Position numbers and translations under genes: made by a program
In this document: positions 1 to 36,045 of the stretch, piece after piece
Layout: each line of letters begins with the position of its first letter
How positions within the stretch are numbered: the first letter of the stretch is position 1
Notes under the pieces: generated by a model
The model's input: only the letters and a program-made list of their open reading frames with translations
The model's database searches: none
What the model was told of the DNA's origin: nothing
Virus record (IMG/VR): IMGVR_UViG_3300032770_000001
Span: 186,001 to 250,000 of that record
Direction: 5' to 3' (one strand)
DNA: 64,000 bases

Positions 1-2
1 CA

Positions 3-500: not shown

Positions 501-527
501 AGATAAAAAGAAAGGTGCCCGACTCAC

Positions 528-893
528 ATGGCGATTTACATTCAGCAGAGCATTGAGCTTGGACTTTTTGGGGATGGTCTTGCTACGACCTTTTCCTATG
601 ATTTCAACAAAGCCCCGATTACTGCGGATTCAGACGGGGTTGCTTTAGCGGTAGGAAGCCCATCTTCACTCGGACCTGTGGTCTGGGTTGCCACGCCGCA
701 GGTTGGGATTGATGGACAGGGAAATGCCATCTACGATGAACCGAGCATCAATGCTCAGATCAACGGCACTATCGTGAGTTTTACTTTCGGTTCCGCTCTT
801 AAAGCTTACGGATCGATCTTCACGGATGGAAATAGCAATCCGTGGCAAATTGGGCCGTACATTCTCGACGTTGCGTTCAACTACAATGGGTAA
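528..893 (+). CDS. small putative virion protein, stand-alone IQQ/GDG domain
   Basis: AAAGGTG RBS; MAIYIQQ...GDGLATTFSY; beta-rich. Confidence 0.7.
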   Translation: MAIYIQQSIELGLFGDGLATTFSYDFNKAPITADSDGVALAVGSPSSLGPVVWVATPQVGIDGQGNAIYDEPSINAQINGTIVSFTFGSALKAYGSIFTDGNSNPWQIGPYILDVAFNYNG

Positions 894-2000: not shown

Positions 2001-2197
2001 TGTACCGCCCCTTTATAAAGGGGACGGGTAGTCCGTCGATGGAACCAGCAATGCATGTGGGGACATCGGGGGAAGCAACCCACGTCGATTGAATGCCTTG
2101 GAAACCCCAACCAAAGAGTGATGTAGAACTCAAAGCGACAGCAAAGCGGTATACGGGGTTGTTGCGGTCGAAAGCTGCTAAGGACGCTCACGAGCTA

Positions 2198-3454: not shown

Positions 3455-3472
3455 ACACTGTGTAATACTCGA

Positions 3473-18535: not shown

Positions 18536-18564
18536 TTGACAAACATTTTGAACTACGGTATTGG
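18536..18564 (+). promoter_or_regulatory. promoter of the structured-RNA/TerD-domain unit
   Basis: Perfect TTGACA, 17-nt spacer, then TATTGG (within the recurrent GGTATT motif); A-rich UP-like tract upstream; the -10 match is weak. Confidence 0.65.
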
Positions 18565-18631
18565 TATAGCAGAGAGATTAACGGAGCGCCCTCTTGGTCG
18601 GGGGCTTTCCACTTAAAAAGTTTTGAAGTTC

Positions 18632-18726
18632 GGGTCGGCCATATCAGCCGTTCCTTCTACATTCACTCGGACAAAGAACCCGGAGAATCTCGGCTCCGGG
18701 AAAATACGTCTGGTGATTTCCGACCC
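18632..18726 (+). ncRNA. conserved stem-loop RNA element, copy 1
   Basis: GGGTCGG/CCGACCC outer helix, CCAT/GATTT internal loop, ATCAG/CTGGT helix, TTCCTTCTAC loop, inserted hairpin 18679-18700. Confidence 0.75.
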
Positions 18727-18943
18727 AAAAATGGCCGGGGGAATCGAGAGCCCCCGGTCGAAAAGATTGTGATTGTCAGTACGACTAGCAACCGAACTGA
18801 CCCGGCCTACGGCGGTCCGCGAGGAACCGTGGGGAAATTTTGAAATAGAGCACCCAAAGCGGTCGGGTCTCGTGGGTAGCGGATGGGCAACCAAGCCGCA
18901 CAGAATCCCACCCCCGGAAACGGGGCATTGATTTTTGAAAAGC

Positions 18944-19014
18944 TTGGACGGCCATATCAGCCCTTCCTTCTACTTGACCTTTACTCAAAAATAGGTCTGA
19001 TGCTTTCCGTCCAA
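18944..19014 (+). ncRNA. conserved stem-loop RNA element, copy 2
   Basis: TTGGACGG/CCGTCCAA outer helix, CCAT/GCTTT internal loop, ATCAG/CTGAT helix, TTCCTTCTAC loop. Confidence 0.75.
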
Positions 19015-19035
19015 TTAGTTTGAAAGGATACGCCA

Positions 19036-21258
19036 ATGAGCAACAATTCGATTCTGATCCGTCGTGCAAACAAGTTCCTCGTCGAGGACAAGGGCACCAA
19101 GACCCGTGTATCCAACGCGGCTCTGGCTGCATTCAACAAGAACCTTCAGGACTTGGGTTACACCTTGTCCGCGAAGGCGATTCGCACTCTCCAGAAGCCG
19201 GGTGTGTCTGCCCCGTTCTCCGAGATCGTGGATGTCCTCAAGGAACTCCGTGGCGTCCGCAACTATCGTCCGATGTATCCGAACTTCCCGACTCAGGTCT
19301 TGGAAGCGGACGAAGCAGAGTTGTATCTGAACGCCATCTTCCACTATTTTTCTTTCGTGGTCGCCGACGCTGTGAATGATTCCAGCGTGATTTGGCTGCC
19401 GAAGTACAAGAAGGATCGTCGTGAGCCGCTGGACGAGAAGGTGCAGTTGACCGTTCTCGAAATCGGCACCGAGGACGATCTGGCAGCGATTGCGGCCCGT
19501 ATCGCGATGTCGAACACGTCCATCTCCGCGACGGACAAGGAAGACCTCCGTTCGCTCATCAAGGATGGCTACCTGCACATCGGTGCGGGTCAGGGCAAGG
19601 TCGGTAAGATTCCGAACAAGGAAAATCTCGCGGTCGTGGGTGCAGTCCTGCTGACCGAGAAGATGTCCTTCGGGTTGATTTCTGAGCAGTTCAAGACTGC
19701 CACGGATGTTCTCCGTCTCGCGACGGCGCTCTCCGATGGCGACGTGTCTCTGGCGGCTGACACCAAGTTCAAGTCGCTGCCGCGCTATATCCGCCGTGTT
19801 CTGGTTTCGATTTTGGAAGCTGCGGAGAACCGCGAAGAGGACATGCTGCGTCACGAGAATCGCTGGGTGAAGCTTGGACACTCGCTGCACATGGGCGAGT
19901 TTTACAAGCGTTTCCCGTTCTCCTACGAAGCGATGCTCAAGCTGCGCAACAAGAGCGCAATGCAGAAGGACCCGATCCGCACCTTTGGTGCGAAGGTTGA
20001 GATGGCACTTCGCGAGGGTGAAGTCCGCAAGGCGATCACCCTGTTGGCGAAGCGTCCGGGTGAGTTTGCCCGTCGTCTCGATCACCTGATGCGTCTCGAT
20101 GAAGATCGTGCTGAGGCGACCGTGGATGCATTCGAGAAGGTCGCGGATGACGTGTCCACGCCTGTGTTGTTGCAGGTGATGGCACACTTCAAGGCGCGTA
20201 ATACGTCCTCCATGCGTGTGGCGATGCCGAAGGGCTCTATCGCTAAGGTGCAGGTACTTCCTCCTACGACTTGGAAGCTGGACTATGTCCAGTGCCAGCG
20301 TGTTGCCGAAGTGTGCACCAAGGCATTGACGGCCCGTTTCTCCAAGCTGGCTCCGCTCGGCAAGGTATATGTGGACGAGAAGTTGCAGAACTACCTCGTT
20401 CCGTTCTCGCAGCGTTCCGCCAACAAGAGTCTGCGCACGATTGTGCGCGGTTCGCAGATCGATCTGGCGAAGGACAAGGACACGATCCGCTTCTTCATCT
20501 GGTGGAAGAACATCGACGACCCGGATACGAAGGCAGCGGGTTGGAGCGGCGACGGTCGCGTAGACCTCGACCTGTCCGCAGTCATCTTTGATGAGAACTG
20601 GAAGAGCCTGACCGACATCGCGTGGTACAATCTGCGTGCCGACAGCGGCTACAGCCACTTCCGCAGCTTCAAGGCGTGTCACAGCGGTGATATCACGAAC
20701 GCTCCGAAGGGTGCGTCCGAGTTCATCGACATCGATATTCCGGGTGCGGTTGCCTACGGTGCGCGTTACGTCGTAATGGACGTGCGCTGCTACACGGGGC
20801 AGAACCTCAATACCATTCCAGAGTGCTCGGCAGGCTGGATGCTTCGTGAGAAGCCGAAGTCTGGTGAAGTGTATGAGCCGAAGACTGTTGTGGACCGTAT
20901 TGACGTTGCGTCCGAAGCTACGTCGGTCATGCCTCTGGTGATCGATCTGGTTGAGCGCAAGGTCATCTGGATGGACATCGTGTCCACGAACCGTCGTGCA
21001 TACAACACGGCAGCGGGTAACCGCGAACAGGTCGCATTGCTGGCGGATGCTTTCACCAAGATTCGCAAGCCGAACCTGTACGAATTGCTCTCTGCGCACG
21101 CGAACGGGCGCGGTAAGCAGGTGTTCGATCCGGCGAAGGCGGATGTTGTATTCTCCGTTGAGTCCGGTATCCAGTTCGAACTGGACAAGATCGCTTCTGA
21201 GTACATGCTGAACGAAGCCCCGGCAAAGCCGAAGGCGAAGGCTGCCAAGAAGCGTTAA
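19036..21258 (+). CDS. large helical protein with C-terminal TerD-like domain (possible Ro60/TROVE-like N-terminus)
   Basis: AAGGA RBS; C-terminal DLDLSA, HSGDIT, SEFIDID, RYVVMDV fit TerD; N-terminal ~450 aa looks helical (TATDVLRLA...DGDVSLA); strongly biased codons. Confidence 0.7.
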   Translation: MSNNSILIRRANKFLVEDKGTKTRVSNAALAAFNKNLQDLGYTLSAKAIRTLQKPGVSAPFSEIVDVLKELRGVRNYRPMYPNFPTQVLEADEAELYLNAIFHYFSFVVADAVNDSSVIWLPKYKKDRREPLDEKVQLTVLEIGTEDDLAAIAARIAMSNTSISATDKEDLRSLIKDGYLHIGAGQGKVGKIPNKENLAVVGAVLLTEKMSFGLISEQFKTATDVLRLATALSDGDVSLAADTKFKSLPRYIRRVLVSILEAAENREEDMLRHENRWVKLGHSLHMGEFYKRFPFSYEAMLKLRNKSAMQKDPIRTFGAKVEMALREGEVRKAITLLAKRPGEFARRLDHLMRLDEDRAEATVDAFEKVADDVSTPVLLQVMAHFKARNTSSMRVAMPKGSIAKVQVLPPTTWKLDYVQCQRVAEVCTKALTARFSKLAPLGKVYVDEKLQNYLVPFSQRSANKSLRTIVRGSQIDLAKDKDTIRFFIWWKNIDDPDTKAAGWSGDGRVDLDLSAVIFDENWKSLTDIAWYNLRADSGYSHFRSFKACHSGDITNAPKGASEFIDIDIPGAVAYGARYVVMDVRCYTGQNLNTIPECSAGWMLREKPKSGEVYEPKTVVDRIDVASEATSVMPLVIDLVERKVIWMDIVSTNRRAYNTAAGNREQVALLADAFTKIRKPNLYELLSAHANGRGKQVFDPAKADVVFSVESGIQFELDKIASEYMLNEAPAKPKAKAAKKR

Positions 21259-24736: not shown

Positions 24737-25183
24737 ATGCCTGACAAAATTACGTACCGTGGCGTCCGCAATGTTGAGGGAGACGTGTATCGCTGCTTCG
24801 TTCACCGCGAAGACAATGTCTCATCGGTCGATTACGAACTCGATCCTCGTAACGACATCTACGACCACAGCCCAACAGGGATCGCGTGGGGCTACGGCGG
24901 CAGCGGTCCGGCTCAGCTTGCGTTGGGCATTCTCGCTGACTATTTCAGTCCGGACGGCAAGAGGGTGCGTTACACCCGCCGCAACGAGTGGGACATGGAT
25001 GGTCGCGACGACCCGAATCAGAAAGCCCTCAAGCATTATCAGGAATTTAAGTGGGCAATCGTGGCGCTATTCCCAATGGATGGCGAGTGGGAGTTGCCCG
25101 GTGAGATAATTGAGAAGTTCGTCACGGGAACGCTGACGGACGAAGAGAGACGCGAGTTTCTCAAGGGTCAAGTGAATGCCTGA
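24737..25183 (+). CDS. DUF6166-like protein
   Basis: HSPTGIAWGYGGSGPAQLALGILAD signature; AGGAG RBS. Confidence 0.7.
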   Translation: MPDKITYRGVRNVEGDVYRCFVHREDNVSSVDYELDPRNDIYDHSPTGIAWGYGGSGPAQLALGILADYFSPDGKRVRYTRRNEWDMDGRDDPNQKALKHYQEFKWAIVALFPMDGEWELPGEIIEKFVTGTLTDEERREFLKGQVNA

Positions 25184-25739
25184 GACCTTACAACTGGTGT
25201 ATTGGGACAACCCGGTTCTTTCGACCGTATGCACTCCCGTCGCCGACAGTGCTTTCGGCGCTGATAAGCTGCGAGACTTTGCCGCCCGGTTGCTGGCGAC
25301 GATGGATGCCAAGAACGGCGTCGGGCTGGCGGCTCCGCAGGTCGCGGTGACTGAGCGGATGTTTGCCATGCATTTCCCGAATAGTGAGCAGGATCGGGAG
25401 CCGTGGAAGCCGATTGTGGTCATCAATCCGACCTTGGAACTGAACGGGGGTACTGTGGCGGCACGTGAAGGCTGCTTGAGTCTGCCGGGGGTGTTTGAAC
25501 AGGTTGCACGGGCTGAGAACGTGGTCATGCGCTATCGGGATGCGGACGGTGACGAATTGGTGCGGGAATTGACCGAAATCGACGCTAGAGTAGCTCAACA
25601 CGAGTTTGACCACCTGAACGGGATCATGTTCTTTGACTATTTGAATATCCGCCCGACTTACGGTCGTCGGATGTCTAAACAGGTCTCGAAACAGGTCATG
25701 CGGATGTGGGAGAAAGAACGCTCTCGACGTGGGCTGTAA
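25176..25739 (+). CDS. def: peptide deformylase
   Basis: All three motifs: GVGLAAPQV, EGCLS, QHEFDHLNG. Confidence 0.95.
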   Translation: MPETLQLVYWDNPVLSTVCTPVADSAFGADKLRDFAARLLATMDAKNGVGLAAPQVAVTERMFAMHFPNSEQDREPWKPIVVINPTLELNGGTVAAREGCLSLPGVFEQVARAENVVMRYRDADGDELVRELTEIDARVAQHEFDHLNGIMFFDYLNIRPTYGRRMSKQVSKQVMRMWEKERSRRGL

Positions 25740-26432: not shown

Positions 26433-26620
26433 TGACACGAGGAGAGAAAGTTCAATTCGCAACTGATCTCGAACTTATGCATGAACGCCCCATGCGTCTC
26501 GGTCTTTATGCAACCGGGCAGCGTATCCACAATGCGATTCGCATGGTGGGGTTTGAAATCGCCGACGACATCACAGGTTGCATCGCATACGAGGAAGCTT
26601 TAGCGGCAGCGGAGAAGTAA
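26432..26620 (+). CDS. hypothetical protein
   Basis: TGATG and TAATG overlaps. Confidence 0.55.
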   Translation: MTRGEKVQFATDLELMHERPMRLGLYATGQRIHNAIRMVGFEIADDITGCIAYEEALAAAEK

Positions 26621-27762
26621 TGGCAAACCGAGAATACAGAGAAGAGCGTTACGACTACACCGGAGGGCGTGAGCACGCCCCGGAGTTGATCGTTGCAGTC
26701 GGCATCTCCGGCTCAGGGAAATCCACGGAGATCACGCAGATGGTGAAACGGTCACAGGGTAAGACCGTCCGCTTGAACCGTGACGACATGCGCAAGATGC
26801 TTTTCTGCGGAGCCGATTGGAACAAGCGGAACGAGGATTACGTCCGCAAGGCTCAGATGGAAGCTGCACGCATCGCGCTCCAGATGGGCAAGAACGTGGT
26901 GATCGACGACACCAACTGCATCCGGCAGACCCGGCAGAAGTGGGAAGAGTTGGCGGTCGATCTGCACACGCACCTGCGCTTCCTGATCTGGCAAGTGGAC
27001 TTAAAGGTCGCTGTAGAGCGAGATGCACTTCGCGGCGTAATCTGCGAAGCCTGTAAGCGTCCTATGGGCGCAATGGTGGGCGAAGAGATCATTCGCCGCC
27101 AAGCAAAGGATTTGGGACAGTTCAGCATGAGTCACGAAGTCAAGGCAGCGACGTTGACCCGCCCCTATTGGGAGCGGCAACAGCTTCTCAAGGGAGGCTT
27201 CATCCCCCGTCTGCCCGGACGCCCGTGGATTCTGTACGATCTGGACGGTACAGTAGCGAAGCGTGGCGACCGTGGTCGGTTCGAGGAGCACAAGGTCATC
27301 CTCGATACCTACTATGACACCGTCGTGCAATGGATTCGTGCATTGCAGCCGTTCTACAACTTGGCAGCCGTCTCCGGACGGCAGGATTTCTGCGGTGATG
27401 ACACCTGCGATTGGTTGCAGGCTGGTGACGTTCCGTTTGACCGCATCATCATGCGGTACACGCGGGATAACCGCCCTGACTATCAGGTGAAGGAAGAAAT
27501 CCTGAAAGAGTTGCAGGCTGTTGTCGGTCAGTCCGTGGGTTACTTCGACTCGAACGAAGAGTTTCGCGTTCCTGACGAGGGAATCGCGTTCGTAATCGAC
27601 GACCGTCCGCAGGTAGTCAAGATGTGGCGGTCGCACGGCTTGACGGTGTTCCCGGTTCGGGGTGTGGATAAGCATACCAAGGACTGCACGGAGCAGCACA
27701 AGGACAAGCCGTGGTACAAGGACGGCTACTGCGCTGAATGCGGAGCGGTCGAGGACTTCTGA
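26620..27762 (+). CDS. pseT: polynucleotide 5'-kinase/3'-phosphatase (T4 PseT-like Pnkp)
   Basis: P-loop GISGSGKST, RDD, DDTN; HAD domain DLDGT, SGR, K, IDDRPQV; start re-called at TAATG overlap. Confidence 0.92.
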   Translation: MANREYREERYDYTGGREHAPELIVAVGISGSGKSTEITQMVKRSQGKTVRLNRDDMRKMLFCGADWNKRNEDYVRKAQMEAARIALQMGKNVVIDDTNCIRQTRQKWEELAVDLHTHLRFLIWQVDLKVAVERDALRGVICEACKRPMGAMVGEEIIRRQAKDLGQFSMSHEVKAATLTRPYWERQQLLKGGFIPRLPGRPWILYDLDGTVAKRGDRGRFEEHKVILDTYYDTVVQWIRALQPFYNLAAVSGRQDFCGDDTCDWLQAGDVPFDRIIMRYTRDNRPDYQVKEEILKELQAVVGQSVGYFDSNEEFRVPDEGIAFVIDDRPQVVKMWRSHGLTVFPVRGVDKHTKDCTEQHKDKPWYKDGYCAECGAVEDF

Positions 27763-27926
27763 TGCTGCTCGACAGTTTTAGAGGTACGGTCGAGCAGGGC
27801 TGTCCGCTGTGTCGTTGGTTTGGCATTGTCCGGGCGTTTCCAGCACATTGGAGATCGCACAGTGTGCTGGAGCGCATGGTTTATCGCTTACGCAAGCTAC
27901 GGAGGCTTCGATGGGTCGCCAAATAA
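27762..27926 (+). CDS. small hypothetical protein
   Basis: TGATG overlap, GAGG RBS, CPLC. Confidence 0.45.
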   Translation: MLLDSFRGTVEQGCPLCRWFGIVRAFPAHWRSHSVLERMVYRLRKLRRLRWVAK

Positions 27927-28198
27927 TCAAACAGCCAAACGGTCTGTTCGCCCTCTGGTCGTCCAATTCGGACAAGTTTGTCTGGATCGACGCCACGAAG
28001 CAGGAGATGATTGACGCTTTCGCTGAGGAGGCTCGAAAAGAAGCAGTCGAGCGAACCGAGGAGATTTTTGCCGAACTGGAAGCCGGGGGAAGCCCCTACT
28101 ATCAGTGGACTCAGACGTATGAAGAGGCCGTCGCCTACTACGAACGTGTCCATGGGAAAAAATTCAATCCGGAAGAAGTAGGAACAGACGATGAGTGA
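27911..28198 (+). CDS. hypothetical protein
   Basis: Start re-called behind GGAGG: MGRQIIKQPNGLFALWSS. Confidence 0.65.
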   Translation: MGRQIIKQPNGLFALWSSNSDKFVWIDATKQEMIDAFAEEARKEAVERTEEIFAELEAGGSPYYQWTQTYEEAVAYYERVHGKKFNPEEVGTDDE

Positions 28199-28466
28199 AC
28201 CGAATTTAGTCGATGCATACACGTTCCGACTGTGCGGCAAGGAATTGGAAACCTTCCTTGCGTGGGAAGAAGAGCACAACAAGACTTGCAAATATTACGA
28301 TGACGGCACGTCCCCGGTCTGCCCGTCAGGGGCGATTGGTGGGCAGATGCAGTTCTGCTTTACCAACACCGGATTGGGGACCATTGTCGTAGTCGAGTGT
28401 TTGTGTTATACCAATGATGGTGACGAACGAGGCAAAAAGAACGTCACCGACTTTGATAGCTGGTAG
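28191..28466 (+). CDS. small putative metal-binding protein (paralog of 56525-56767)
   Basis: W...H...C, F..TGLG, CLC, TDFDSW. Confidence 0.65.
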   Translation: MSEPNLVDAYTFRLCGKELETFLAWEEEHNKTCKYYDDGTSPVCPSGAIGGQMQFCFTNTGLGTIVVVECLCYTNDGDERGKKNVTDFDSW

Positions 28467-28473
28467 GTAAACT

Positions 28474-28779
28474 ATGGAAACACAGTTGTCCCCCGAAGTT
28501 GCAGTCTCGCAGCCGTCCCCCGATGATGTTGTGGTAACAGTCAGTGAGCAGGAAGAACAAGACCTGCGTTCACGTTTTACGACGTTCATCTCTTCGAACC
28601 CGACCGCCAAACGCCGCAGTGCTTTCTTAGCGGTGCGTTTCCCGTACACCGGGAAGGGTGGTTACGCAAAGCGCCGTGTTGTCCTCGATATGCTGGTTGC
28701 CGAGGGTCAGGTGCCGGAAGTGTTCGGGAGTCCTGAACTTCGCAAGCAACTTAAACAGAATGGACAAAATTCTCGATAA
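28474..28779 (+). CDS. hypothetical protein
   Basis: AGGT RBS, chain. Confidence 0.55.
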   Translation: METQLSPEVAVSQPSPDDVVVTVSEQEEQDLRSRFTTFISSNPTAKRRSAFLAVRFPYTGKGGYAKRRVVLDMLVAEGQVPEVFGSPELRKQLKQNGQNSR

Positions 28780-29146
28780 AGCTGGCGCGACCGCTTCGCT
28801 GATTTGTGCCGTGCACTGTATCAGCCTGCCGTTACTGTTCGCGGTGATCCCGGCAATAGGGCTCACGTGGCTGGATAATGTCTGGTTTGATCGAGTGTTT
28901 CTGGCGGCAGCCGTGGTGTTTGTGATTCTTGCTCATCCACGTGGGTATATAAGACACCGTCGTTGCATTCCAGCGGTGCTGGCACTCATCGGTATTGCTA
29001 CTGTGGTGTTGGCGATCTCGCTGTGGGAACAATCGGAAGCGCACCATTATCTGGTTGCATTGGGCGGCTTAACAATCGCTTCATCGCATTGGCTTAATCG
29101 GCATTTCCTGCATCACGCTTGTTGCGAGGGACATCATGGCAGATGA
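28760..29146 (+). CDS. MerC-domain membrane protein
   Basis: DKAGATASLICAVHC..LP N-terminal signature; 4 hydrophobic segments; GY.RHRR; His/Cys tail. Confidence 0.8.
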   Translation: MDKILDKAGATASLICAVHCISLPLLFAVIPAIGLTWLDNVWFDRVFLAAAVVFVILAHPRGYIRHRRCIPAVLALIGIATVVLAISLWEQSEAHHYLVALGGLTIASSHWLNRHFLHHACCEGHHGR

Positions 29147-29438
29147 GTATTATGTGCTTTCGTTGAAATGGTCGGTCGGTTCCGACTACGTCGTGTTTTG
29201 GGGACCGAATGACGGCGGCTATTTCACCAATCTTGCCGAAGCAGGACGATATTCGCAGGAGCAGATTGACGCACATCGTAGCTACTACGACAACGGCCAT
29301 ACCACCCTCGCGGTGCCATGTAGCGAGATTGACGCATTGGCATGGCGGACTGTTTTCGCTGATCGCCTGCACGACACGATTTTGAAGAATCATGGCGTGG
29401 ACTGGATGAAGGTGCTTGAAGAGCGGAGATGCGGATGA
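29136..29438 (+). CDS. hypothetical protein
   Basis: GAGGG RBS; FWGPNDGGY...AGRY motif. Confidence 0.65.
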   Translation: MADEYYVLSLKWSVGSDYVVFWGPNDGGYFTNLAEAGRYSQEQIDAHRSYYDNGHTTLAVPCSEIDALAWRTVFADRLHDTILKNHGVDWMKVLEERRCG

Positions 29439-29698
29439 GTGAAGTTACACTAACCTGCTCCCATACGATGGGGTTGGAGCGGGGGGATTTTATCACTGTC
29501 TCCGGGTTTGCAAACATAGCCAACAACGGCTCGTTCATCGTTCGCCGTGTTCGTGGCTTTGGGTTGATCGTGCAGCCAGCTTCGTTCTGGGATTATGTCC
29601 GGCACTATGCTCGACGGGTTATGACGTGGGCAAAGTGGTATTACTATGGAATATCCGACTTTGCCAACGAGTTGAGAGACTCGTGGATGGACGAATAG
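29435..29698 (+). CDS. hypothetical protein with FCCH-like beta module
   Basis: VTLT...GLERGDFITVSG...NNGSFIV. Confidence 0.55.
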   Translation: MSEVTLTCSHTMGLERGDFITVSGFANIANNGSFIVRRVRGFGLIVQPASFWDYVRHYARRVMTWAKWYYYGISDFANELRDSWMDE

Positions 29699-29705
29699 GA
29701 AATTT

Positions 29706-29876
29706 ATGGCGCAGCCGAAACGTCGAATGATACGGCAAGAGTGGTATCTTGCTTACATGCTGTGTGTGCTTTCAGGTGCCAGCTTTTTCGACGGGCACCG
29801 GATTAGCGGTGGAATTCTGTTAGGATTTTCGGTTTTGATTGTCGTTCTCTGCGATGGATTCGGAGTTCGATTGTGA
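29706..29876 (+). CDS. small membrane protein (56 aa)
   Basis: AGGA RBS; two hydrophobic stretches; below the ORF-track cutoff. Confidence 0.55.
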   Translation: MAQPKRRMIRQEWYLAYMLCVLSGASFFDGHRISGGILLGFSVLIVVLCDGFGVRL

Positions 29877-29885
29877 AAGGATACT

Positions 29886-31055
29886 ATGCCTGTTTACTTG
29901 AGAGACATTTTGCCTGTCGATTTGCTGATGAAGCACATCGAGGATGGCGTAGTCCGCAAGCAGGTACACCCTCAGTATCCTGATCTCTTCATCCTCAATT
30001 ATTCTGAACATGCCCAGTTTGGCAAGATTTGGGACAACGTCACCAACAACTGCCGTGGGCTGATCGTACACGCACCCACCGGATTGCCGGATGCGGTCGT
30101 AGTTGCACGTCCGTTCAAGAAGTTCCACAACCTGAACACGACCTACATCCCGGAGACGATGGAAGAGAATCTCCCGAAGGATGAAGTTCCGCTTGTGACC
30201 ACGAAGCTGGATGGGTCAATGGGCGTACTATACGTGTGGGACAACCTTCTTTGGATGGCAACGCGGGGCTCGTTCGCATCAGAGCAGGCGCGTTGGGCTA
30301 CGGGATGGTTACGTGCGCACTTCGAGCGTCTCGGTCAGTATCGTCCGTATCATCCTTGGTTGCCGGATACGACTCCGGTATTTGAGGTCATTTACGAAGA
30401 GAATCGAATCGTAGTGGCTTATGATTTCGAGGGTTGTGTGCTGCTCGGAATCATCAACCATGAGGACGGACGTGAGTTCCGCCGCGACTCAGTTGAACGG
30501 TTCGGTGCCATGTACGATTTCAAGGTTGTGCCGAAGTTCGACAAGTCCCTGTCGGAGTGTGTTTCAGAGAACACCCTGAACGAGGAAGGTTACGTGTTGA
30601 CCTATAGTAACGGTACTAAAGTAAAGGTCAAGTTCCTCGATTATTGCCGCCTCCACAAGGTTCTTACTGGTATGAATCCACGGGGGATATGGGAATTACT
30701 AGCCAAAAATCAGACCGAGACGGTAGAATTGATATTGAAGGACGAGAAAATGCCGGAGCAGTTCAAGGCATGGTTCTCCGGCTGGGTTGAGCACCTTCGC
30801 ACGAAGTATCAGGATATCGAACGTCGTGCGCAGGCGGTTTTTGCAACCCGCCCCTTCACTGGTAAGTGGGCGTCGGAGCCATCGCCGGAAGGCTTGAAGT
30901 TGTGGCGTAAGACGCAGGCTTTGCACTTCCAGAAGACCCCGGACTTGTGTTCGGTTCTGTTTGCGATGCTCGACGAGAAGCCGTATGCGGAGATCATCTG
31001 GGACAGACTGAAGCCGAGAGCGGATGAAAGAACGTTCAGAAAGGACGGAGAGTAA
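29886..31055 (+). CDS. RNA ligase, T4 Rnl1 family
   Basis: CRGLI, RPFKKFHN, motif I KLDGS, ATRGSF, FEVI..ENRIV, EGYV, KVK. Confidence 0.92.
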   Translation: MPVYLRDILPVDLLMKHIEDGVVRKQVHPQYPDLFILNYSEHAQFGKIWDNVTNNCRGLIVHAPTGLPDAVVVARPFKKFHNLNTTYIPETMEENLPKDEVPLVTTKLDGSMGVLYVWDNLLWMATRGSFASEQARWATGWLRAHFERLGQYRPYHPWLPDTTPVFEVIYEENRIVVAYDFEGCVLLGIINHEDGREFRRDSVERFGAMYDFKVVPKFDKSLSECVSENTLNEEGYVLTYSNGTKVKVKFLDYCRLHKVLTGMNPRGIWELLAKNQTETVELILKDEKMPEQFKAWFSGWVEHLRTKYQDIERRAQAVFATRPFTGKWASEPSPEGLKLWRKTQALHFQKTPDLCSVLFAMLDEKPYAEIIWDRLKPRADERTFRKDGE

Positions 31056-31270
31056 TGACACTGTTGAATGCACTGTTCGGATGCACGCACGGGAATTACA
31101 GTTTCCCCCGTACACCCAAGGGGCCGAAACGACCTCAGGCAGCAGCAATCACGGGCACATACGTTGTCTGTCTCGACTGCGGCAAAGAAATGCCGTATGA
31201 CATGAACGAAATGAAAATCGTGGACGCTAAGAAGCTGGACGTTTCTTGCGTCCCCGTTCTGGAAGGATAA
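31055..31270 (+). CDS. small zinc-binding protein
   Basis: LFGCTHGNYSFP...TYVVCLDCGKE.PYD. Confidence 0.7.
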   Translation: MTLLNALFGCTHGNYSFPRTPKGPKRPQAAAITGTYVVCLDCGKEMPYDMNEMKIVDAKKLDVSCVPVLEG

Positions 31271-31273
31271 CCC

Positions 31274-31316
31274 ATGAACTTGGCAGCTACAGTCGCTATG
31301 AACTTGGCAGCTACAG
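31274..31316 (+). repeat. 24-nt-period tandem duplication at gene start
   Basis: ATGAACTTGGCAGCTACAG at 31274 and 31298. Confidence 0.9.
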
Positions 31317-32605
31317 CCGTCATGAAGGAACTGCGACGGGCGGGTCATCAGGCTTACCTCGTGGGTGGTTGTGTGCGTGACATCCTTCTCCAGCGTAAGC
31401 CAAAGGATTTCGACGTAACGACTGATGCCACACCTGAGCAGGTTCAGGCTCTTTTTGAACACACGCTGGCAGTCGGTGCCTCTTTCGGTGTGGTGATTGT
31501 TCTGGTGGATGTCGATGGCGTTGACCATCAGATTGAAGTCGCCACGTTCCGAACCGATGGTCAGTATTCTGACGGTCGGCGACCGGATTCTGTCGTCTAC
31601 AGCCTGAGTGCGGAAGAGGACGTGAAGCGTCGGGACTTCACTATTAACGGTTTGTTGTGTCTCGGCGAGGCAGACACGGGCTCCGTAGCGGAGTACGAGG
31701 CCGCTCTTACGGGTGCCACAGACCGCGTCACGGTCGGCAATCATACGTTCGGAATCGTGGATCATGTCGGCGGTATCGCTGACATCCAGCGGGGAATTAT
31801 CCGTTGCATCGGCGACCCGGATGCCCGGTTCGGCGAGGACGCCTTGCGGATGCTTCGGGCGGTTCGGTTTGCTGCTCAGCTTGGCTTCGAGATCGAGAAC
31901 GCCACGTGGAGGGCAATCGAAAAGAATGCCCTCGCGATCAAGCAGGTCAGTGCGGAACGGGTTCGTGACGAACTCTTCAAGCTGTTCGCTGCTCCATTCC
32001 CGGTCGAGGGGTTGGTGCCACTGTTCAGCACCGGGCTGGCGCAGCACGTATTTCCGGTAGAGGTTGTCCGGGAATTGCGGATGGCGTACTGCTTGCGGCG
32101 ATTCGAGCGATTCAACTCTGCGCTGCCGGAAGTCGGCTTGGCGATGTTGCTCAACGACACGAACCCACGGGCGACTGTCGAACTTTGCAACGCCCTCAAG
32201 CTGCCGAACGACGTAAAGGAAGCGGTTGTGAACGGCGTGTTCTACGTCGATACGATTGCTGCCTCTCCGAAGTTCGACATGGCAACCGTTAAGCGCACGA
32301 TGCGCAAGAGGGGGATCAAGATTGCTCTGGAGTTGTTCTTGCAGGATGAAATGGTCGGCAAGACGAACCGGGGCATGGAAGAGACCATGCGCATCTATAA
32401 CCGATTCGCCAACTTGACTCCAGAAGAGATTAAGCCTGCGCCGTTTATCACTGGCGACGATTTGATCGCGAAGGGGTTGACGCCCGGACCGGAGTTCCGA
32501 CGCATCCTCGAAGACCTTGAGACTTACCAGTTGAACGGTGGAATCAAGTCTCGTGCTGATGCTGAGGAACGATTGAAATTCGTGTGGACGGGGGAGGCTA
32601 AGTAA
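31274..32605 (+). CDS. cca: class II tRNA nucleotidyltransferase (CCA-adding enzyme)
   Basis: YLVGGCVRD, DFD, EVATFR, RRDFTING, EDALRMLRAVRF; lacks the poly(A) polymerase GRRF signature; no HD domain. Confidence 0.9.
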   Translation: MNLAATVAMNLAATAVMKELRRAGHQAYLVGGCVRDILLQRKPKDFDVTTDATPEQVQALFEHTLAVGASFGVVIVLVDVDGVDHQIEVATFRTDGQYSDGRRPDSVVYSLSAEEDVKRRDFTINGLLCLGEADTGSVAEYEAALTGATDRVTVGNHTFGIVDHVGGIADIQRGIIRCIGDPDARFGEDALRMLRAVRFAAQLGFEIENATWRAIEKNALAIKQVSAERVRDELFKLFAAPFPVEGLVPLFSTGLAQHVFPVEVVRELRMAYCLRRFERFNSALPEVGLAMLLNDTNPRATVELCNALKLPNDVKEAVVNGVFYVDTIAASPKFDMATVKRTMRKRGIKIALELFLQDEMVGKTNRGMEETMRIYNRFANLTPEEIKPAPFITGDDLIAKGLTPGPEFRRILEDLETYQLNGGIKSRADAEERLKFVWTGEAK

Positions 32606-33150
32606 TGCAGCCAGCCTCCCCATCCCGCTTTAAGAGCCTGACCATACTGGCGGATGTATCCACTCTCAAAGAAGCACAGTCAATCCGCGATCTTCTTGAA
32701 GTCGAATTTACCGATTTGAGTATCCGGCTTCTCCCGGTGCCGGGACTGATCCCTGAGATGTGGGAGAAAATTCTGATCCCTTCATTGCCAACGGATCAAC
32801 TGGTCATTGGGTTCGGGTTGTGCGGCACCGTAGCGGCACGCATTCAGGAAACACACCCGGAGTTGGGTTTGTCGGTGATGGCGATCAACTCTCCGACTAC
32901 GACCGCATTTTGGCAGGTCATCTGGAAATCGGATCAACGGGTTGCAATCTATTCCAGCAACTATGAACCGATCAAGGGCGTGAACTGGACCGGATTGGCT
33001 GAAACGGCTCTGGACGTGGACTGGCTTCAGCACGGGATGTTCTCGGAAAATGGTGGGAACCTTTGCAAATATGCCATCGCTTACTACGTCGCGGCTTACC
33101 TCATCAACCGAAATCTGGAACCAGCGGTTTCTTCATTTTCTGCTCAATAA
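32605..33150 (+). CDS. hypothetical protein (possible degenerate alpha/beta hydrolase fold)
   Basis: GGAGG RBS; LVIGFGLCG resembles a nucleophile elbow without Ser. Confidence 0.55.
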   Translation: MQPASPSRFKSLTILADVSTLKEAQSIRDLLEVEFTDLSIRLLPVPGLIPEMWEKILIPSLPTDQLVIGFGLCGTVAARIQETHPELGLSVMAINSPTTTAFWQVIWKSDQRVAIYSSNYEPIKGVNWTGLAETALDVDWLQHGMFSENGGNLCKYAIAYYVAAYLINRNLEPAVSSFSAQ

Positions 33151-33201
33151 GACTCTTCCCAAAAAGTCTTTCTCGCGTTATATTCAAACAGAGGTTTAAC
33201 G

Positions 33202-33501
33202 ATGAAATTCTATCGCAACGCTTTACTGCTCGTGTTGTTCGCCATCGTGAACTACTACGGTATCCAGTACGGATTCCTCGGACTAAACACTGCTAACGAT
33301 TTCGCGTTCATTGGCGGCTTCGTCGGCCTCGTGATTTTGTTCATCACCGATGTGCTCATCATTTGGCGTGTCATCAAGACCTACGCCAAGAAAGCTGAGG
33401 ATTCACTTTGCCAAGAAAAAGCAACCCTAGCGGCGGAAGCCTCGGCTCCGTCACCGTCACCCGCTCCAACAACCCAACAAGCTTCGGAAACGTCGAAGTA
33501 A
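33202..33501 (+). CDS. membrane protein (2 TM)
   Basis: GAGG RBS; hydrophobic N-half; directly upstream of the SPFH gene. Confidence 0.65.
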   Translation: MKFYRNALLLVLFAIVNYYGIQYGFLGLNTANDFAFIGGFVGLVILFITDVLIIWRVIKTYAKKAEDSLCQEKATLAAEASAPSPSPAPTTQQASETSK

Positions 33502-33512
33502 AGGTTCCCAAA

Positions 33513-34466
33513 ATGTCAATTGGAAAACCCATCTCGTACATCGTCCTCGCGATTGTGTTGCTGATAATCACCATCTCAGTCGGCTGCGCTTTCAATCGCG
33601 TCAGTCCCGGTCATGCCGGGATCGTCGTCAACCAAGCTGGTTCCAACAAGGGTGTGCAGGATCAAGTCGCACGCACCGGATGGTTCTGGATCAACCCGTT
33701 CACCGAGAATCTGATCGAGTATCAGACCTCGCAACGTATGGAGAAGTGGACTAAGGATTCGAATGAAGGCAAGCCCGGTAACACCGAAGTGTCCTTCACC
33801 AACAAAGACTCGATGGTGATTTACGCTGATGTTGCTATCGCGTTCTCCCTCGATCCGAACAAAGTTCCGGCGTTCTACCTCAAGTTTTTGGCGACGAGTG
33901 AGGATGATCTGGATCAGAAGTTCACCAACGGCTACCTGCGCAACGATGTGCGTAACTGCCTCAACGAACTGGCTGGTCAGTACGACATCAAGCAGATCAT
34001 GGGCGACAACGCCGAGTTCTTGAAGCGCACGCAGAAGTGCATTCAGGACGACGTGATTCAGTGGGGCGTCAACATCGATCAGTTTGGTCTGATCGGGGCA
34101 CCGCGTCCGCCGCAGAACGTGGTCGATTCAATCAACCTGAAAGCACAGGCTGAACAGATCGCCACACAGAAACAGATCGAACTGACGCAGGTCCAAGCCG
34201 AAGCCGCAAAGCGTGTTGCCGAAGCTGAGGGCGATGCGAAGGCTCAGGTTACCCGCGCACAAGGTGAAGCTGAGGCAAACCGTCTCCGCAACACCAGCAT
34301 CACAGAGAACATCCTGCGTATGCGTGCACTGGACAACCAGCACGATCTGATCTGGAATTTGAAAGACCATCCGGGAATCATGCCATCCACGCTAGTCATC
34401 AGCGGAGGCGGCGGCAAAGATTCCGTCCCCGGCATCCTGTTCAACGTGGACGCCGGAAAGAAGTAA
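33513..34466 (+). CDS. SPFH/band-7/prohibitin family protein
   Basis: N-terminal TM, VSPGHAGIVV, GWFWINPF, AE/AQ-rich coiled coil AQGEAEANRL; start re-called at ATG 33513. Confidence 0.9.
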   Translation: MSIGKPISYIVLAIVLLIITISVGCAFNRVSPGHAGIVVNQAGSNKGVQDQVARTGWFWINPFTENLIEYQTSQRMEKWTKDSNEGKPGNTEVSFTNKDSMVIYADVAIAFSLDPNKVPAFYLKFLATSEDDLDQKFTNGYLRNDVRNCLNELAGQYDIKQIMGDNAEFLKRTQKCIQDDVIQWGVNIDQFGLIGAPRPPQNVVDSINLKAQAEQIATQKQIELTQVQAEAAKRVAEAEGDAKAQVTRAQGEAEANRLRNTSITENILRMRALDNQHDLIWNLKDHPGIMPSTLVISGGGGKDSVPGILFNVDAGKK

Positions 34467-34468
34467 AC

Positions 34469-34666
34469 ATGGTGCCGACTTGCTGGCTTTGTGGGACTGT
34501 CAATGATTGCAACTGTCCCTCTCCTGAGGAGTACGAGAAGCGAAAACAGGAGCGGGAGCGACGGGAGCAACAGAAGCAGCACGAAGCCAGCATTCGGCGT
34601 CAGCGTGCCAAGATTAAAATTTCACCGTGGTATCATCCGCCCAACTCGTCCGAGGACTCAGAATAG
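34469..34666 (+). CDS. small Cys-rich hypothetical protein
   Basis: CWLCG...CNC followed by a charged helix. Confidence 0.5.
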   Translation: MVPTCWLCGTVNDCNCPSPEEYEKRKQERERREQQKQHEASIRRQRAKIKISPWYHPPNSSEDSE

Positions 34667-34680
34667 TCGCACTTTGGATC

Positions 34681-34848
34681 ATGGTGCTGTTCTTCACCAT
34701 GCTCGGAGTCGTCGGCGCTTTTCTGTTTATCGCCTCGGCGATCACTAATCAGCCTGACGGTGGGGTCATCAGTTTTCTGCTTGTGATTTTCTGCATAAAA
34801 ATGGTATTCTGGCTGCTAGATTCTCTCGTGGAGACAATGGAACGATGA
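34681..34848 (+). CDS. small membrane protein
   Basis: Two hydrophobic stretches; ATGA overlap with the next gene; start uncertain. Confidence 0.5.
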   Translation: MVLFFTMLGVVGAFLFIASAITNQPDGGVISFLLVIFCIKMVFWLLDSLVETMER

Positions 34849-35618
34849 CCGAGAAGTGGCCCTCAACGCTTATCATCTGGCGGCATGGACAGAGCGAAGC
34901 TAACGTCCGCAAGGAAGCGGCAAAGAAAGCCGGACAGGAGCCTGCTTGGACTGGTCGGCTACGTGATATGGATTCCCCTCTCACGTCACTTGGTGAGCAA
35001 CAGGCTCTCGTTTTGGGTCAGGAATTGGGTCGTCGCTATCCGGCGAACGACATCTACCGTATCGAGAAGCACACGTTTGAATATCCTGCGATTCGCAGCA
35101 ACAAGATGATTCAAATCATCCTGTCTTCCCCATACGTGCGCACCAGACAGACTACAGCGAAGATCATCGAGGGTCTCGGTTATACGCCACGGGTTGTTTA
35201 CGATGAGCGTCTCCGTGAAATCGACTTCGGGATGATGGACGGCATCGACCGTGCCACGTTCCGCACGCTTTATCCTCATGAAGCGGACCGTCGCGAGAAG
35301 GACGGCAAGTATTGGTATCGACCGCCCGGTGGTGAGAATCGCCCCGATTGCCGTATGCGCGTGCATAGCCTACTCGACACCCTGAACCGTGATTATGTCG
35401 GTATGTGCGTCGGCATTTCCACCCACAGCGTCATCAAGCTGGGCTTCCGCAGCCTGCTGGAACGCTGGGGCGAGGAAGAATACATGCAGGTTGACCGTGA
35501 GGACGACGTGAAGAATGCCAGTTTGACGGTTTACAACCGTTTTGAACAGCGCAAGCTGGTGCTTCAAGAGTACAATACGATTGTTCCGATTGGAGAAAAT
35601 GATGAAAGGCTGCTCTAA
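34845..35618 (+). CDS. histidine phosphatase (phosphoglycerate mutase family)
   Basis: RHGQS, SSPYVRTRQT, LREIDFG, GGE, STH, NAS. Confidence 0.92.
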   Translation: MTEKWPSTLIIWRHGQSEANVRKEAAKKAGQEPAWTGRLRDMDSPLTSLGEQQALVLGQELGRRYPANDIYRIEKHTFEYPAIRSNKMIQIILSSPYVRTRQTTAKIIEGLGYTPRVVYDERLREIDFGMMDGIDRATFRTLYPHEADRREKDGKYWYRPPGGENRPDCRMRVHSLLDTLNRDYVGMCVGISTHSVIKLGFRSLLERWGEEEYMQVDREDDVKNASLTVYNRFEQRKLVLQEYNTIVPIGENDERLL

Positions 35619-36045
35619 GGCTGCTACCGTACCAGTGTTCGCAAACCGCGCCCCGTGGAACGAATTAGTTCTGCGTGGCAAGCGTCGAGTCAAGACCCTG
35701 AGTTTCAATTGGAAATATCGCGGTCCGATTCTTCTGTATACCTCCAAAGATCGCACCGACGATTGGGGTCTCTTCGAGTACCGCGTTCGCGGTCTCAAGA
35801 TGGCGGACATTCCGACTGGTGCAATCGTCGGCATCGCCGAAGTTGTAGACGTGGTGGAAACTGATGCGTTGCCGCAGACGTTTTATGACAAAGACCCGGC
35901 TCTGTTTGATACGCTCGGACAGTCCCACGTAGTCATCATCGACAACGTGAAGCGATTCAAGACTCCGGTTCCGTTCAAACCGCCGAAGGGTGCCATCCGC
36001 ATCATGAAAGCCCCGGCGTCCTTGCTCAAAAGAGCGACTGCATGA
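35599..36045 (+). CDS. ASCH-domain protein
   Basis: PW..LVLRGK...YRGPILLY...GAIVGIAEVVDV; the usual KxxExR motif is altered. Confidence 0.75.
   Translation: MMKGCSKAATVPVFANRAPWNELVLRGKRRVKTLSFNWKYRGPILLYTSKDRTDDWGLFEYRVRGLKMADIPTGAIVGIAEVVDVVETDALPQTFYDKDPALFDTLGQSHVVIIDNVKRFKTPVPFKPPKGAIRIMKAPASLLKRATA

Follow-up and report, generated by a model that had tools for sequence, protein, structure and literature searches.

A probable two-arm RNA end-repair block with variable cargo in a clade of huge soil phages

The T4 enzymes Pnkp and Rnl1 are established as a repair system that counters the PrrC anticodon nuclease (PMC7824862), and the question raised by the present locus is whether a longer run of RNA-related genes in a far larger phage constitutes a comparable system and, if so, which genes belong to it. 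The window, by which we mean the entire 64,000-nucleotide stretch that was analyzed, derives from a 455.7-kb IMG/VR contig of a soil phage belonging to a huge-phage clade, and in it the genes for Pnkp, Rnl1, a CCA enzyme, a two-transmembrane (2-TM) protein, an SPFH protein, and a histidine phosphatase all lie on the + strand (Table 1). A sequence-only reading had proposed that these genes, together with an ASCH gene and a putative ribonucleoprotein (RNP) encoded upstream, form a multi-part, possibly membrane-anchored counter-defense against tRNA-cleaving immunity. Its gene list, coordinates, and co-orientation were reproduced with catalytic motifs intact (ASCH, which is marginal, excepted), and the 5-17 kb that it placed between these genes and the RNA/TerD unit was measured as 5.4 to 17 kb, with the 740-aa ORF as the reference point. 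Its interpretation survived only in part, in that the genes are not distributed independently of each other and the fold of the upstream protein resembles Ro60, but neither a core role for SPFH/2-TM nor a single machine was upheld. Gene identities, motifs, synteny, and recurrence instead point to a two-arm RNA (most likely tRNA) end-repair block plus variable cargo, a reading that we regard as probable; its substrates, the role of its phosphatase, and a counter-defense purpose are what we infer.

Table 1. Features of the block and its flanks (window coordinates)
Position	Strand	Feature	Basis
18536..19035	+	Conserved non-coding region upstream of Ro60-like gene	Repeats, RNA fold, alignment with L233
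19036..21258	+	740-aa protein, Ro60/TROVE-like helical ring plus TerD-fold domain	NCBIfam NF041916 E 1.7e-123; AF2 model
24737..25183	+	DUF6166 protein, syntenic marker of block	Pfam E 6e-20
25176..25739	+	Peptide deformylase (PDF), always 5' of Pnkp in clade	Pfam E 1e-43
26620..27762	+	Pnkp, T4-type polynucleotide 5'-kinase/3'-phosphatase, end-healing	AAA_33 + HAD_PNKP; phrog_505 E 2e-65
28760..29146	+	MerC-like small membrane protein, between Pnkp and Rnl1	Pfam MerC E 2e-22
29886..31055	+	Rnl1-family ATP-dependent RNA ligase, end-sealing	PF09511 61 bits (cut-off 28 bits); phrog_562 E 2e-57
31055..31270	+	71-aa ORF separating Rnl1 from CCA, retained in some relatives	
31274..32605	+	Class II CCA-adding tRNA nucleotidyltransferase, 3'-end rebuilding	Three Pfam domains
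32605..33150	+	181-aa UPF0227/YqiA-like alpha/beta-hydrolase-fold protein, nucleophile serine replaced	Alignment A2; AF2 pLDDT 85
33202..33501	+	99-aa protein, two transmembrane segments, SPFH partner	Hydropathy
33513..34466	+	SPFH/Band-7 protein, predicted membrane-anchored	Band_7 85 bits; phrog_200 E 1e-60
34845..35618	+	Branch-1 histidine phosphatase, complete active site	His_Phos_1 91 bits
35602..36045	+	Probable ASCH-like small protein	Three-orthologue profile vs ASC-1 ASCH domain in PDB, E 5e-4

The first arm would be Pnkp and Rnl1, acting as in T4 to heal and seal the anticodon loop: the ends left by a cut there would be a 5'-OH and a 2',3'-cyclic phosphate, Pnkp would phosphorylate the 5' end and remove the 3' phosphate, and Rnl1 would then reseal the break. 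All expected catalytic motifs were found in these two proteins, as well as in the CCA enzyme and the histidine phosphatase. Like its T4 counterpart, Pnkp combines an N-terminal P-loop kinase (G28ISGSGKS) with a C-terminal DxDxT phosphatase (D207LDGT); the ligase has the motifs I, IV, and V of the Rnl1 family, with K107LDG, E234GY, and K245VKVK showing no variation across 32 homologues; and the two genes lie no more than 2.2 kb apart on the same strand. Unlike the T4 system, Pnkp (380 aa) carries a Cys-rich C-terminal extension, and the ligase is ∼34% identical to known phage Rnl1 proteins and scores 59 bits, under the T4 RnlA equivalog cut-off of 242 bits. All clade members examined (L002-L006, L013, L016, L065, L066, and an 894-kb contig) have PDF-Pnkp-Rnl1, with Pnkp orthologues at 47-88% identity and the DUF6166 gene kept upstream of PDF in L002-L004, L065, L233, and the 894-kb contig. 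Elsewhere in IMG/VR, Pnkp was within 10 kb in 21 of 63 other Rnl1-containing loci, and an independent lineage (L162) has a Pnkp, CCA, and Rnl1 triad inside 4.5 kb.

The second arm would comprise the CCA enzyme, the 181-aa protein, and the histidine phosphatase, and would heal and recap 3' ends. Each of the three domains of the CCA enzyme (PolyA_pol head, RNA-binding, and NucTran2_2) exceeds its Pfam cut-off, the motifs GGCVRD..DFD, RDFTIN, and EDALR are present, and the NCBIfam CCA model scored 264 bits versus 198 bits for PcnB; Pfam found no HD domain in it. In the E. coli-type CCA enzyme, the HD domain reportedly has phosphodiesterase and phosphatase activities, a result attributed to Yakunin and colleagues in 2004. 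The window resembles that enzyme in the proposed pairing of a CCA-adding polymerase with a phosphoesterase that would clear blocked 3' ends but differs in that the phosphoesterase would be a separate protein, encoded two genes away in relatives. By analogy, the histidine phosphatase may substitute for the fused HD domain, clearing a 3' or 2',3'-cyclic phosphate off a trimmed acceptor end that the CCA enzyme would then restore. Its residues R13-H14-G15, R99, E125, and H194 are invariant, and we consider it a candidate RNA 3'-end phosphatase; no RNA-acting relative of it is known, and among named families it comes closest to PhoE, CobC, and PGM-like enzymes, so a metabolic or signaling substrate is possible. 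The conserved 181-aa gene had been absent from the sequence-only reading. Foldseek matched the model of its product to YqiA and YdeN, its relatives carry the names esterase or UPF0227, and the nucleophile position is Gly or Glu; lacking the catalytic serine, it would be a non-catalytic accessory.

It could be argued that only Pnkp and Rnl1 cooperate and that the CCA, histidine phosphatase, 181-aa, SPFH, and ASCH genes are unrelated auxiliaries kept by clade-wide collinearity. Most of the synteny is indeed confined to a single phage clade and could be due to common descent instead of selected linkage, the histidine phosphatase resembles metabolic phosphatases, and enolase and iPGM genes lie a few kb upstream in L065. 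Moreover, L013 and L016 retain the 181-aa gene with no adjoining CCA gene, placing it directly after Rnl1 and one small ORF away, respectively. However, the 181-aa gene is 3' of CCA in most relatives and directly so in the window, L065, and the 894-kb contig, and in the window the two genes overlap at ATGA (stop codon of CCA, start of the 181-aa gene). The trio is contiguous in L002, L004, L005/6, L065, and the 894-kb contig, is interrupted in a 463-kb contig solely by contig ends, and in L151 (a 453,890-bp genome) has been relocated and inverted together, ∼6.5 kb upstream of PDF. The order of the block reflects more than chance, since the enzyme genes retain it in relatives with just 45-70% protein identity, whereas the small intervening ORFs come and go. 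At least 24 contigs (paired by equal size) were common to the top-120 Rnl1 and top-120 histidine phosphatase matches, short contigs of 3.9, 5.6, and 5.9 kb among them. Outside the clade, linkage of the histidine phosphatase was seen at one locus: in an unrelated phage (L152), RtcB and a CCA enzyme are encoded 4 and 6 kb, respectively, from a 51%-identical homolog. A phosphoesterase near a tRNA nucleotidyltransferase is itself recurrent, as HAD_PNKP in L068, as a fused HD domain in L152, and as Metallophos in L081 (adjacent-but-one to the transferase) and L024 (after Rnl1, ∼3.5 kb upstream of the transferase). We therefore find cooperation restricted to Pnkp and Rnl1 unlikely; co-occurrence, which had been suggested as a check, led us to reject independent distribution among relatives, with Pnkp-Rnl1 and CCA/181-aa/histidine phosphatase as conserved sub-modules.

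Both arms might nevertheless serve the phage's own tRNA and other RNA rather than counter-defense, maturing and maintaining these molecules over a long infection through CCA addition, end trimming, and the mending of spontaneous damage. In favor of this, huge phages have tRNAs in large sets, a 24-tRNA array of L152 encloses its histidine phosphatase, RtcB, and CCA genes, and the conserved block includes PDF, another translation-support gene. However, CCA is already encoded in 23 of the 24 tRNAs of that array, which would make the L152 enzyme needless for maturation and favors repair. The window itself contains no tRNA genes, nor were tRNA-like RNAs or Rfam families found in it, which speaks against housekeeping but also against the tRNA-repair reading. 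In addition, breaks with 5'-OH and cyclic-phosphate ends, the substrates of Pnkp and Rnl1, are typical of toxin RNases, as in T4 versus PrrC (PMC7824862). A housekeeping purpose thus appears rather doubtful to us. PADLOC gave no hint in favor of the two-arm reading.

The 2-TM and SPFH genes, which the sequence-only reading had counted as part of the toolkit, are a two-gene cassette and not a core part of the block. They sit between the 181-aa and histidine phosphatase genes, and close relatives (L002-L006, L065, and the 894-kb contig) had no SPFH gene within 10 kb of the block. A small ORF with two or three transmembrane segments is found just 5' of SPFH, itself hydrophobically anchored at its N-terminus in the window, in L068, L024, L063, L062, L081, and L122 as well, immediately so except in L081 (where a 142-aa 1-TM ORF intervenes). 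Two other lineages have a comparable cassette next to tRNA nucleotidyltransferases and phosphoesterases; SPFH adjoins a CCA enzyme or tRNA nucleotidyltransferase in L068, L024/L063, and L081, and the adjacent order in L068 is HAD_PNKP phosphatase, 2-TM, SPFH, and CCA. Three lineages (the window, L068, and L024/L063/L081) thus have the pair at most two genes away from a tRNA nucleotidyltransferase, as might be expected if all six genes and the RNP formed one membrane-anchored counter-defense machine, with SPFH as scaffold and the Ro60-like RNP capturing substrates or acting as a decoy. An earlier prediction (Burroughs and Aravind 2016, as cited in bioRxiv 10.1101/312249) had also linked Band-7 to RtcB. 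Compared with the Band-7/b7a-tRNA/RtcB association as cited there, the window likewise has a Band-7/SPFH gene within an RNA-ligase neighborhood, but its ligase is Rnl1 and not RtcB, the nearest repair neighbor of SPFH is a CCA-type nucleotidyltransferase, no tRNA-like RNA is detectable beside SPFH, and the cassette has a small 2-TM partner and is dispensable in close relatives. Furthermore, SPFH was within 10 kb in just 5 of 79 CCA-ascertained phage loci, which is not clearly above expectation, and the majority of SPFH loci lack repair genes in their vicinity. A single machine is accordingly not supported and strikes us as quite improbable; in the two-arm reading, the pair would be a mobile cassette that landed inside the second arm and that may assist repair but would not be required.

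The Ro60-like fold of the 740-aa protein and the true TROVE/vWA gene that the 894-kb relative has at the corresponding position would also be consistent with one machine. Although a member of the MXAN_6230/SCO0854 family, the protein has no RING domain, and at the sequence level it has no Pfam TROVE or TerD match. Its AF2 model (pLDDT 85) matched TerD structures with Z 11-15, the TerD-fold domain covering approximately residues 476-673, and among 48,161 chains searched the top non-TerD matches were Ro60 chains 9l5y, 1yvp, and 2nvo (Z 10.2, 9.5, and 8.5 over 316-324 residues), which supports the proposal of an upstream RNP protein. In this model, the ring superposes on those of Ro60/Y RNA RNPs, including phage phiLo Ro60 (PMC12135203, PDB 9l5y), with TerD replacing vWA. 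As in such RNPs, a conserved non-coding region lies directly 5' of the gene, though no Y RNA or tRNA-like fold was detected in the window. This region includes a pair of 28-nt direct repeats, at 18633 and 18946, as well as a promoter-like TTGACA..TATTGG, has an RNA fold z-score of -2.1, and aligns in conserved blocks with intergenic DNA upstream of the L233 orthologue; with no Rfam or tRNA match, it is a candidate ncRNA or leader. The protein and this region probably belong to the same RNA-surveillance neighborhood as the repair block.

The sequence-only reading had held that the combination of enzymes was the point. That combination is not new, because jumbo-phage kits of Rnl1/Rnl2/RtcB, PNK-HAD, CCA enzyme, and ROT/TROVE were catalogued together in 2021 (Iyer, Anantharaman, Krishnan, Burroughs, and Aravind; PMC7824862), and the window shares with them its ATP-grasp RNA ligase, PNK-HAD, CCA-adding enzyme, and ROT/TROVE protein. 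It differs in that TerD takes the place of vWA and in that the CCA gene has fixed partners, the branch-1 histidine phosphatase and the serine-less YqiA-like protein; PMC7824862 makes no mention of histidine phosphatases, SPFH, or ASCH, and the histidine phosphatase and esterase-like partners may be new.

The MerC-like and ASCH-like genes are variable cargo, the former being common to L065 only and the latter found among relatives in L065 and L002 only. The earlier ASCH call drew no Pfam match at E ≤ 0.01 and is marginally supported by the profile match given in Table 1. The 71-aa ORF is 77% identical in L065, with weaker copies in L002 and L016.

The contig that carries the block (IMGVR_UViG_3300032770_000001, also Ga0335085_10000040) is 455,708 bp long, and a megablast search with the 10.5-kb region found no nucleotide relative among 50,697 deposited phage records. 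Pfam and PHROG scans bore out the Pnkp, Rnl1, CCA-adding enzyme, 2-TM, SPFH and histidine phosphatase genes that a sequence-only reading had named, all on the + strand. The ASCH call made in the same reading held only marginally: there was no Pfam match at E ≤ 0.01, and a profile of three orthologues, when compared with PDB, reached the ASCH domain of ASC-1 at E 5e-4 and EOLA1 at E 0.22. A conserved 181-aa gene had been overlooked. PADLOC matched none of ten proteins to a defence system, and the window yielded no match to tRNA, Y RNA or any further RNA family in ARAGORN or in Rfam, whether gathering thresholds or E ≤ 1 were applied. Promoters and terminators in the scan showed no excess over the shuffled expectation, with the exception of a strong terminator after the gene for a 740-aa protein upstream of the block.

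Genes of the putative RNA-end repair block (positions in the window)
Feature	Position	Strand	Support or remark
Pnkp	26620-27762	+	Pfam and PHROG scans
Rnl1	29886-31055	+	Pfam and PHROG scans
Class II CCA-adding enzyme	31274-32605	+	Pfam scan
181-aa protein	32605-33150	+	Start overlaps CCA stop codon; conserved
2-TM protein, 99 aa	33202-33501	+	Next to SPFH
SPFH/Band-7 protein	33513-34466	+	Pfam scan
Branch-1 histidine phosphatase	34845-35618	+	Pfam scan
ASCH-like protein	35602-36045	+	Marginal support

The Rnl1 gene has more than 100 homologues at 45–69% identity, many of them on contigs of 185–894 kb. We fetched 64 Rnl1 loci from IMG/VR (the window's own included) and several contexts from other collections, and the window's proteins were mapped onto all of them in a view of 10 kb on each side of the gene. 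Clade members keep the order DUF6166-PDF-...-Pnkp-...-Rnl1-...-CCA-181aa-...-histidine phosphatase, but not the small ORFs lying between these genes. The most informative relative is a 453,890-bp genome in which PDF, Pnkp and Rnl1 are in place while the CCA gene, a 95-aa ORF, a 190-aa homologue of the 181-aa protein and the histidine phosphatase stand together, inverted, ∼6.5 kb upstream of PDF. In two further loci the 181-aa homologue follows Rnl1, directly and with no adjoining CCA gene in L013 and with one small ORF between them in L016. From the kept order, the relocated trio and the position of the 181-aa gene in these two loci, we conclude that the block consists of a Pnkp-Rnl1 arm, a CCA/181-aa/phosphatase arm and variable cargo (MerC, ASCH and an SPFH cassette). 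As a crude lower bound on co-occurrence, the lists of the best 120 Rnl1 and best 120 histidine phosphatase matches have at least 24 contigs of identical length in common, some of which are only 3.9–5.9 kb long.

The closest relative is a 185-kb contig (L065; GCA_020073485.1, JAIQFB010000006.1) that was binned as an Acidobacteriia MAG and has all of the block enzymes as well as MerC-like and ASCH-like genes, without the SPFH pair. Directly upstream of its phage-like block (positions 1–4411) are genes for iPGM, enolase, a GlmU-like nucleotidyltransferase and ribosomal protein S21; it may be that the contig belongs to a huge phage carrying metabolic genes and was mis-binned, or its binning may hint at the host. 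The block order of the window also recurs on an 894,233-bp contig (JGI 3300035696), which reads TROVE/vWA, DUF6166, PDF, Pnkp, Rnl1, CCA, histidine phosphatase and SNF2 helicase, its genuine TROVE/vWA Ro60 gene lying ∼9.5 kb upstream of Rnl1. This contig would be exceptionally large for a phage and may be a concatemer or a misassembly. On another (IMGVR_UViG_3300033405_000001, 463,033 bp; loci L003 and L148), Rnl1, CCA and the 181-aa gene are at the contig end and the histidine phosphatase is at the start, as would fit a complete genome that is circular or circularly permuted.

The repair of tRNA cut by toxins is a classic phage counter-defence; to our knowledge, detailed studies have been confined to its anticodon-loop arm, Pnkp plus Rnl1. 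Both enzymes of this arm retain their motifs in the window. Pnkp has the N-terminal P-loop kinase motif GxxGxGK[ST] (G28ISGSGKS; AAA_33, 73 bits against a cut-off of 27) and the C-terminal HAD phosphatase motif DxDxT (D207LDGT; HAD_PNKP, 93 bits against 27.6), and its residues 22–347 match phrog_505 at E 2e-65. By these motifs it is a T4-type polynucleotide kinase-phosphatase, with predicted 5'-kinase and 2',3'/3'-phosphatase activities on RNA ends. At its C-terminal end (about residues 355–380; window 27700–27762) it extends beyond T4-length Pnkp by a Cys/His-rich tail, C..H...C..C, that may bind zinc. In Rnl1, motifs I (KxDG; K107), IV (EGYV; E234-G235-Y236) and V (KxK; K247/K249) are invariant among 32 homologues, the family score is 61.2 bits (PF09511, cut-off 28.3), and residues 17–380 match phrog_562 at E 2e-57. 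Because it scores 59 bits against a cut-off of 242 on the T4 RnlA equivalog model TIGR02308, the sequence places it as a divergent family member and not as an equivalog of T4 RnlA. The two enzymes would repair anticodon-loop breaks as in T4. Between their genes is one for a MerC-like small membrane protein (28760–29146; Pfam E 2e-22), odd cargo for a phage, which is 80% identical in the closest relative (L065, 8611–9015).

The block is suggestive of a further arm, separable from the first, that would deal with damaged acceptor ends by means of an end-healing phosphatase of a new kind and a conserved partner that is non-catalytic. The head motifs A, B and D of its CCA enzyme (GGxVRD..DxD, RDFTxN and EDxxR) are present as G31GCVRD with D45FD, R120DFTIN and E188DALR, and they are invariant among 11 homologues; the enzyme, putatively specific for CCA rather than poly(A) addition, scores 264 bits on the NCBIfam CCA model NF009814, just below the cut-off of 290, and 198 bits on PcnB. 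Unlike the E. coli-type multifunctional CCA/repair enzyme, which has a fused HD domain, it gave no Pfam match to an HD phosphohydrolase domain and scored only 62 bits against 451 on PRK10885. The histidine phosphatase scores 91 bits on His_Phos_1 (cut-off 21.7), and its catalytic set R13-H14-G15, R99, E125 and H194 is invariant among five orthologues, which identifies it at the sequence level as a member of branch 1 of the superfamily with a predicted intact active site. An alignment of eight sequences gave a confident predicted model of the 181-aa protein (pLDDT 85), whose best structural matches are small alpha/beta hydrolases of the YqiA/YdeN type, and distant relatives carry the annotation esterase or UPF0227. 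An active esterase was rejected because all eight sequences have Gly or Glu in place of the nucleophile, and the protein reads as a serine-less, YqiA-like pseudo-esterase, presumably a non-catalytic accessory. In the arm as we picture it, the histidine phosphatase would clear a blocking 3' or cyclic phosphate off the trimmed acceptor end, the HD-less CCA enzyme would then rebuild that end, and the 181-aa protein would act as an accessory. An end-healing role for the phosphatase is suggested because a phosphoesterase, of varied family, repeatedly adjoins or is fused with a tRNA nucleotidyltransferase: HD in L152, HAD in L068, Metallophos in L081 (three loci from other contigs) and a histidine phosphatase in the window.

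Neither the heal-seal-recap triad nor the histidine phosphatase is confined to this clade. The triad is not unique to it because a 123.6-kb contig (L162) carries Pnkp, CCA and Rnl1 within 4.5 kb, with a CCA enzyme 35% identical to that of the window. On the 303.5-kb contig L152 (GCA_030012885.1, JASCQV010010426.1), an array of 24 tRNA genes encloses genes for an RtcB ligase, for a CCA enzyme that contains an HD domain and for a 51%-identical histidine phosphatase, the last lying 4 kb from the ligase gene and 6 kb from the CCA gene. CCA is already encoded in 23 of these 24 tRNAs, which speaks for repair of ends, as opposed to maturation, in L152. The array also holds an AlaRS-like fragment.

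Jumbo-phage repair kits that combine Rnl1/Rnl2/RtcB, PNK-HAD, a CCA enzyme, RlaP and ROT/TROVE have been described (Iyer et al. 2021, PMC7824862), so the combination of enzymes that the sequence-only reading had stressed as the point of interest is of a known kind. Histidine phosphatases, SPFH and ASCH are not mentioned there, and our literature searches turned up nothing that connects histidine phosphatases with RNA repair. The present analysis establishes the gene identities, the intact active sites, the two conserved sub-modules and the reappearance of the triad and of the histidine phosphatase outside this lineage, and its value lies in a testable CCA/pseudo-esterase/histidine phosphatase trio, the recurrence of SPFH with nucleotidyltransferases and a TROVE-TerD protein. 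Should RNA ends prove to be substrates of the histidine phosphatase, RNA repair would gain a new enzyme family, and the block would point to soil-bacterial host defences that attack tRNA 3' ends.

The sequence-only reading had counted the SPFH gene in a possibly membrane-anchored toolkit. The SPFH product scores 84.9 bits on Band_7 (cut-off 23.6) and has a hydrophobic N-terminal membrane anchor. As a core component it was rejected, since the cassette is missing from the block of every close relative within the 10 kb examined to either side. No NfeD partner is found next to it: the neighbour is the 2-TM protein, which has a low-complexity tail and matches no Pfam or PHROG family significantly (its sole match, DUF1418, was below the cut-off), and NfeD was rejected for it in the absence of an OB-fold and a family match. 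The association of Band-7 with RtcB predicted by Burroughs and Aravind, as cited in bioRxiv 10.1101/312249, is echoed by the suggestive link of SPFH with tRNA nucleotidyltransferases described next, but the window's SPFH comes without a tRNA-like RNA (ARAGORN, Rfam) and the ligase of the block is Rnl1, unlike the b7a-tRNA/RtcB system.

The 2-TM/SPFH pair is a real cassette because a small ORF with 2–3 TM segments recurs just upstream of SPFH in six loci from other phages, directly preceding it in five; in the sixth, L081, a 142-aa 1-TM ORF separates the two. The closest SPFH homologue, 59% identical, is on a 215-kb contig (L068), where genes for a HAD_PNKP phosphatase, a 2-TM protein, SPFH and a CCA enzyme are all adjacent. 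Downstream of this cluster (L068, 14684–16712) are membrane-stress-type genes encoding a TPM-domain protein and a PspA/IM30 homologue. In a third lineage, loci L024 and L063 share the order Rnl1, Metallophos, GT2, short tRNA nucleotidyltransferase, 86-aa ORF, 204-aa protein, 2-TM and SPFH. Apart from its 142-aa ORF and the lack of the 86-aa ORF, L081 follows this order from Metallophos on; L122 and L126 show just the right-hand part, cut off by the contig ends. SPFH cassettes next to tRNA nucleotidyltransferases are in this way seen three times independently. Set against these cases, the majority of the 79 SPFH-ascertained loci lack repair genes, and SPFH lies within 10 kb in only 5 of 79 CCA-ascertained loci. 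The link is suggestive and not established, and SPFH would be an optional add-on to the repair arms.

Upstream of the block, the 740-aa protein (19036–21258) has no Pfam match at all, TROVE and vWA included, and neither the protein nor its profile matched PDB sequences. It matches NCBIfam NF041916 (the MXAN_6230/SCO0854 family; E 1.7e-123) without the RING domain of that family, which more widely comprises ∼2,900 representative clusters and is uncharacterised; some bacterial members have N-terminal ankyrin fusions. In a comparison of its predicted model (30-sequence alignment, pLDDT 85) among 48,161 PDB representative chains, residues ∼476–673 showed the TerD fold (Z 11–15), and the three hits after TerD were Ro60 proteins from phage phiLo (9l5y, Z 10.2 over 316 aa), Xenopus (1yvp, Z 9.5 over 324 aa) and Deinococcus (2nvo, Z 8.5 over 323 aa), followed by a hit of Z 6.9 over 57 residues. 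Because TerD and then Ro60 are the top structural hits, the model indicates a Ro60-like helical ring with TerD in place of vWA. The TerD module is separable, since a 500-aa Ro60-like version in a relative (L233, 4001–5503) stops before that domain.

The intergenic region upstream of the L233 gene (3618–4000) aligns with window 18536–19035 in conserved blocks, among them a promoter-like element, a 28-nt repeat (found twice in the window, at 18633 and 18946) and a hairpin with a kept stem and a differing loop. This conserved 500-nt region has no Rfam or tRNA-like match, and its motifs, when sought in viral and metagenome contigs, were found only on the window's own contig; as judged from the two sequences compared (window and L233), it fits a candidate non-coding RNA or leader. 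The Ro60-like protein probably acts in the same RNA-surveillance setting as the repair arms. The fullest reading would give the CCA enzyme two previously undescribed partners, a histidine phosphatase that heals tRNA 3' ends and replaces HD in trans and a pseudo-esterase cofactor, in an arm organised at the membrane by 2-TM/SPFH in some phages and fed by a new Ro60-like TROVE-TerD RNP with its RNA encoded at 18.5–19.0 kb; taken whole, we consider it improbable. Antisense across the whole 740-aa gene runs a 694-codon ORF (19015–21099, - strand), which is most likely not a gene and only a consequence of composition.
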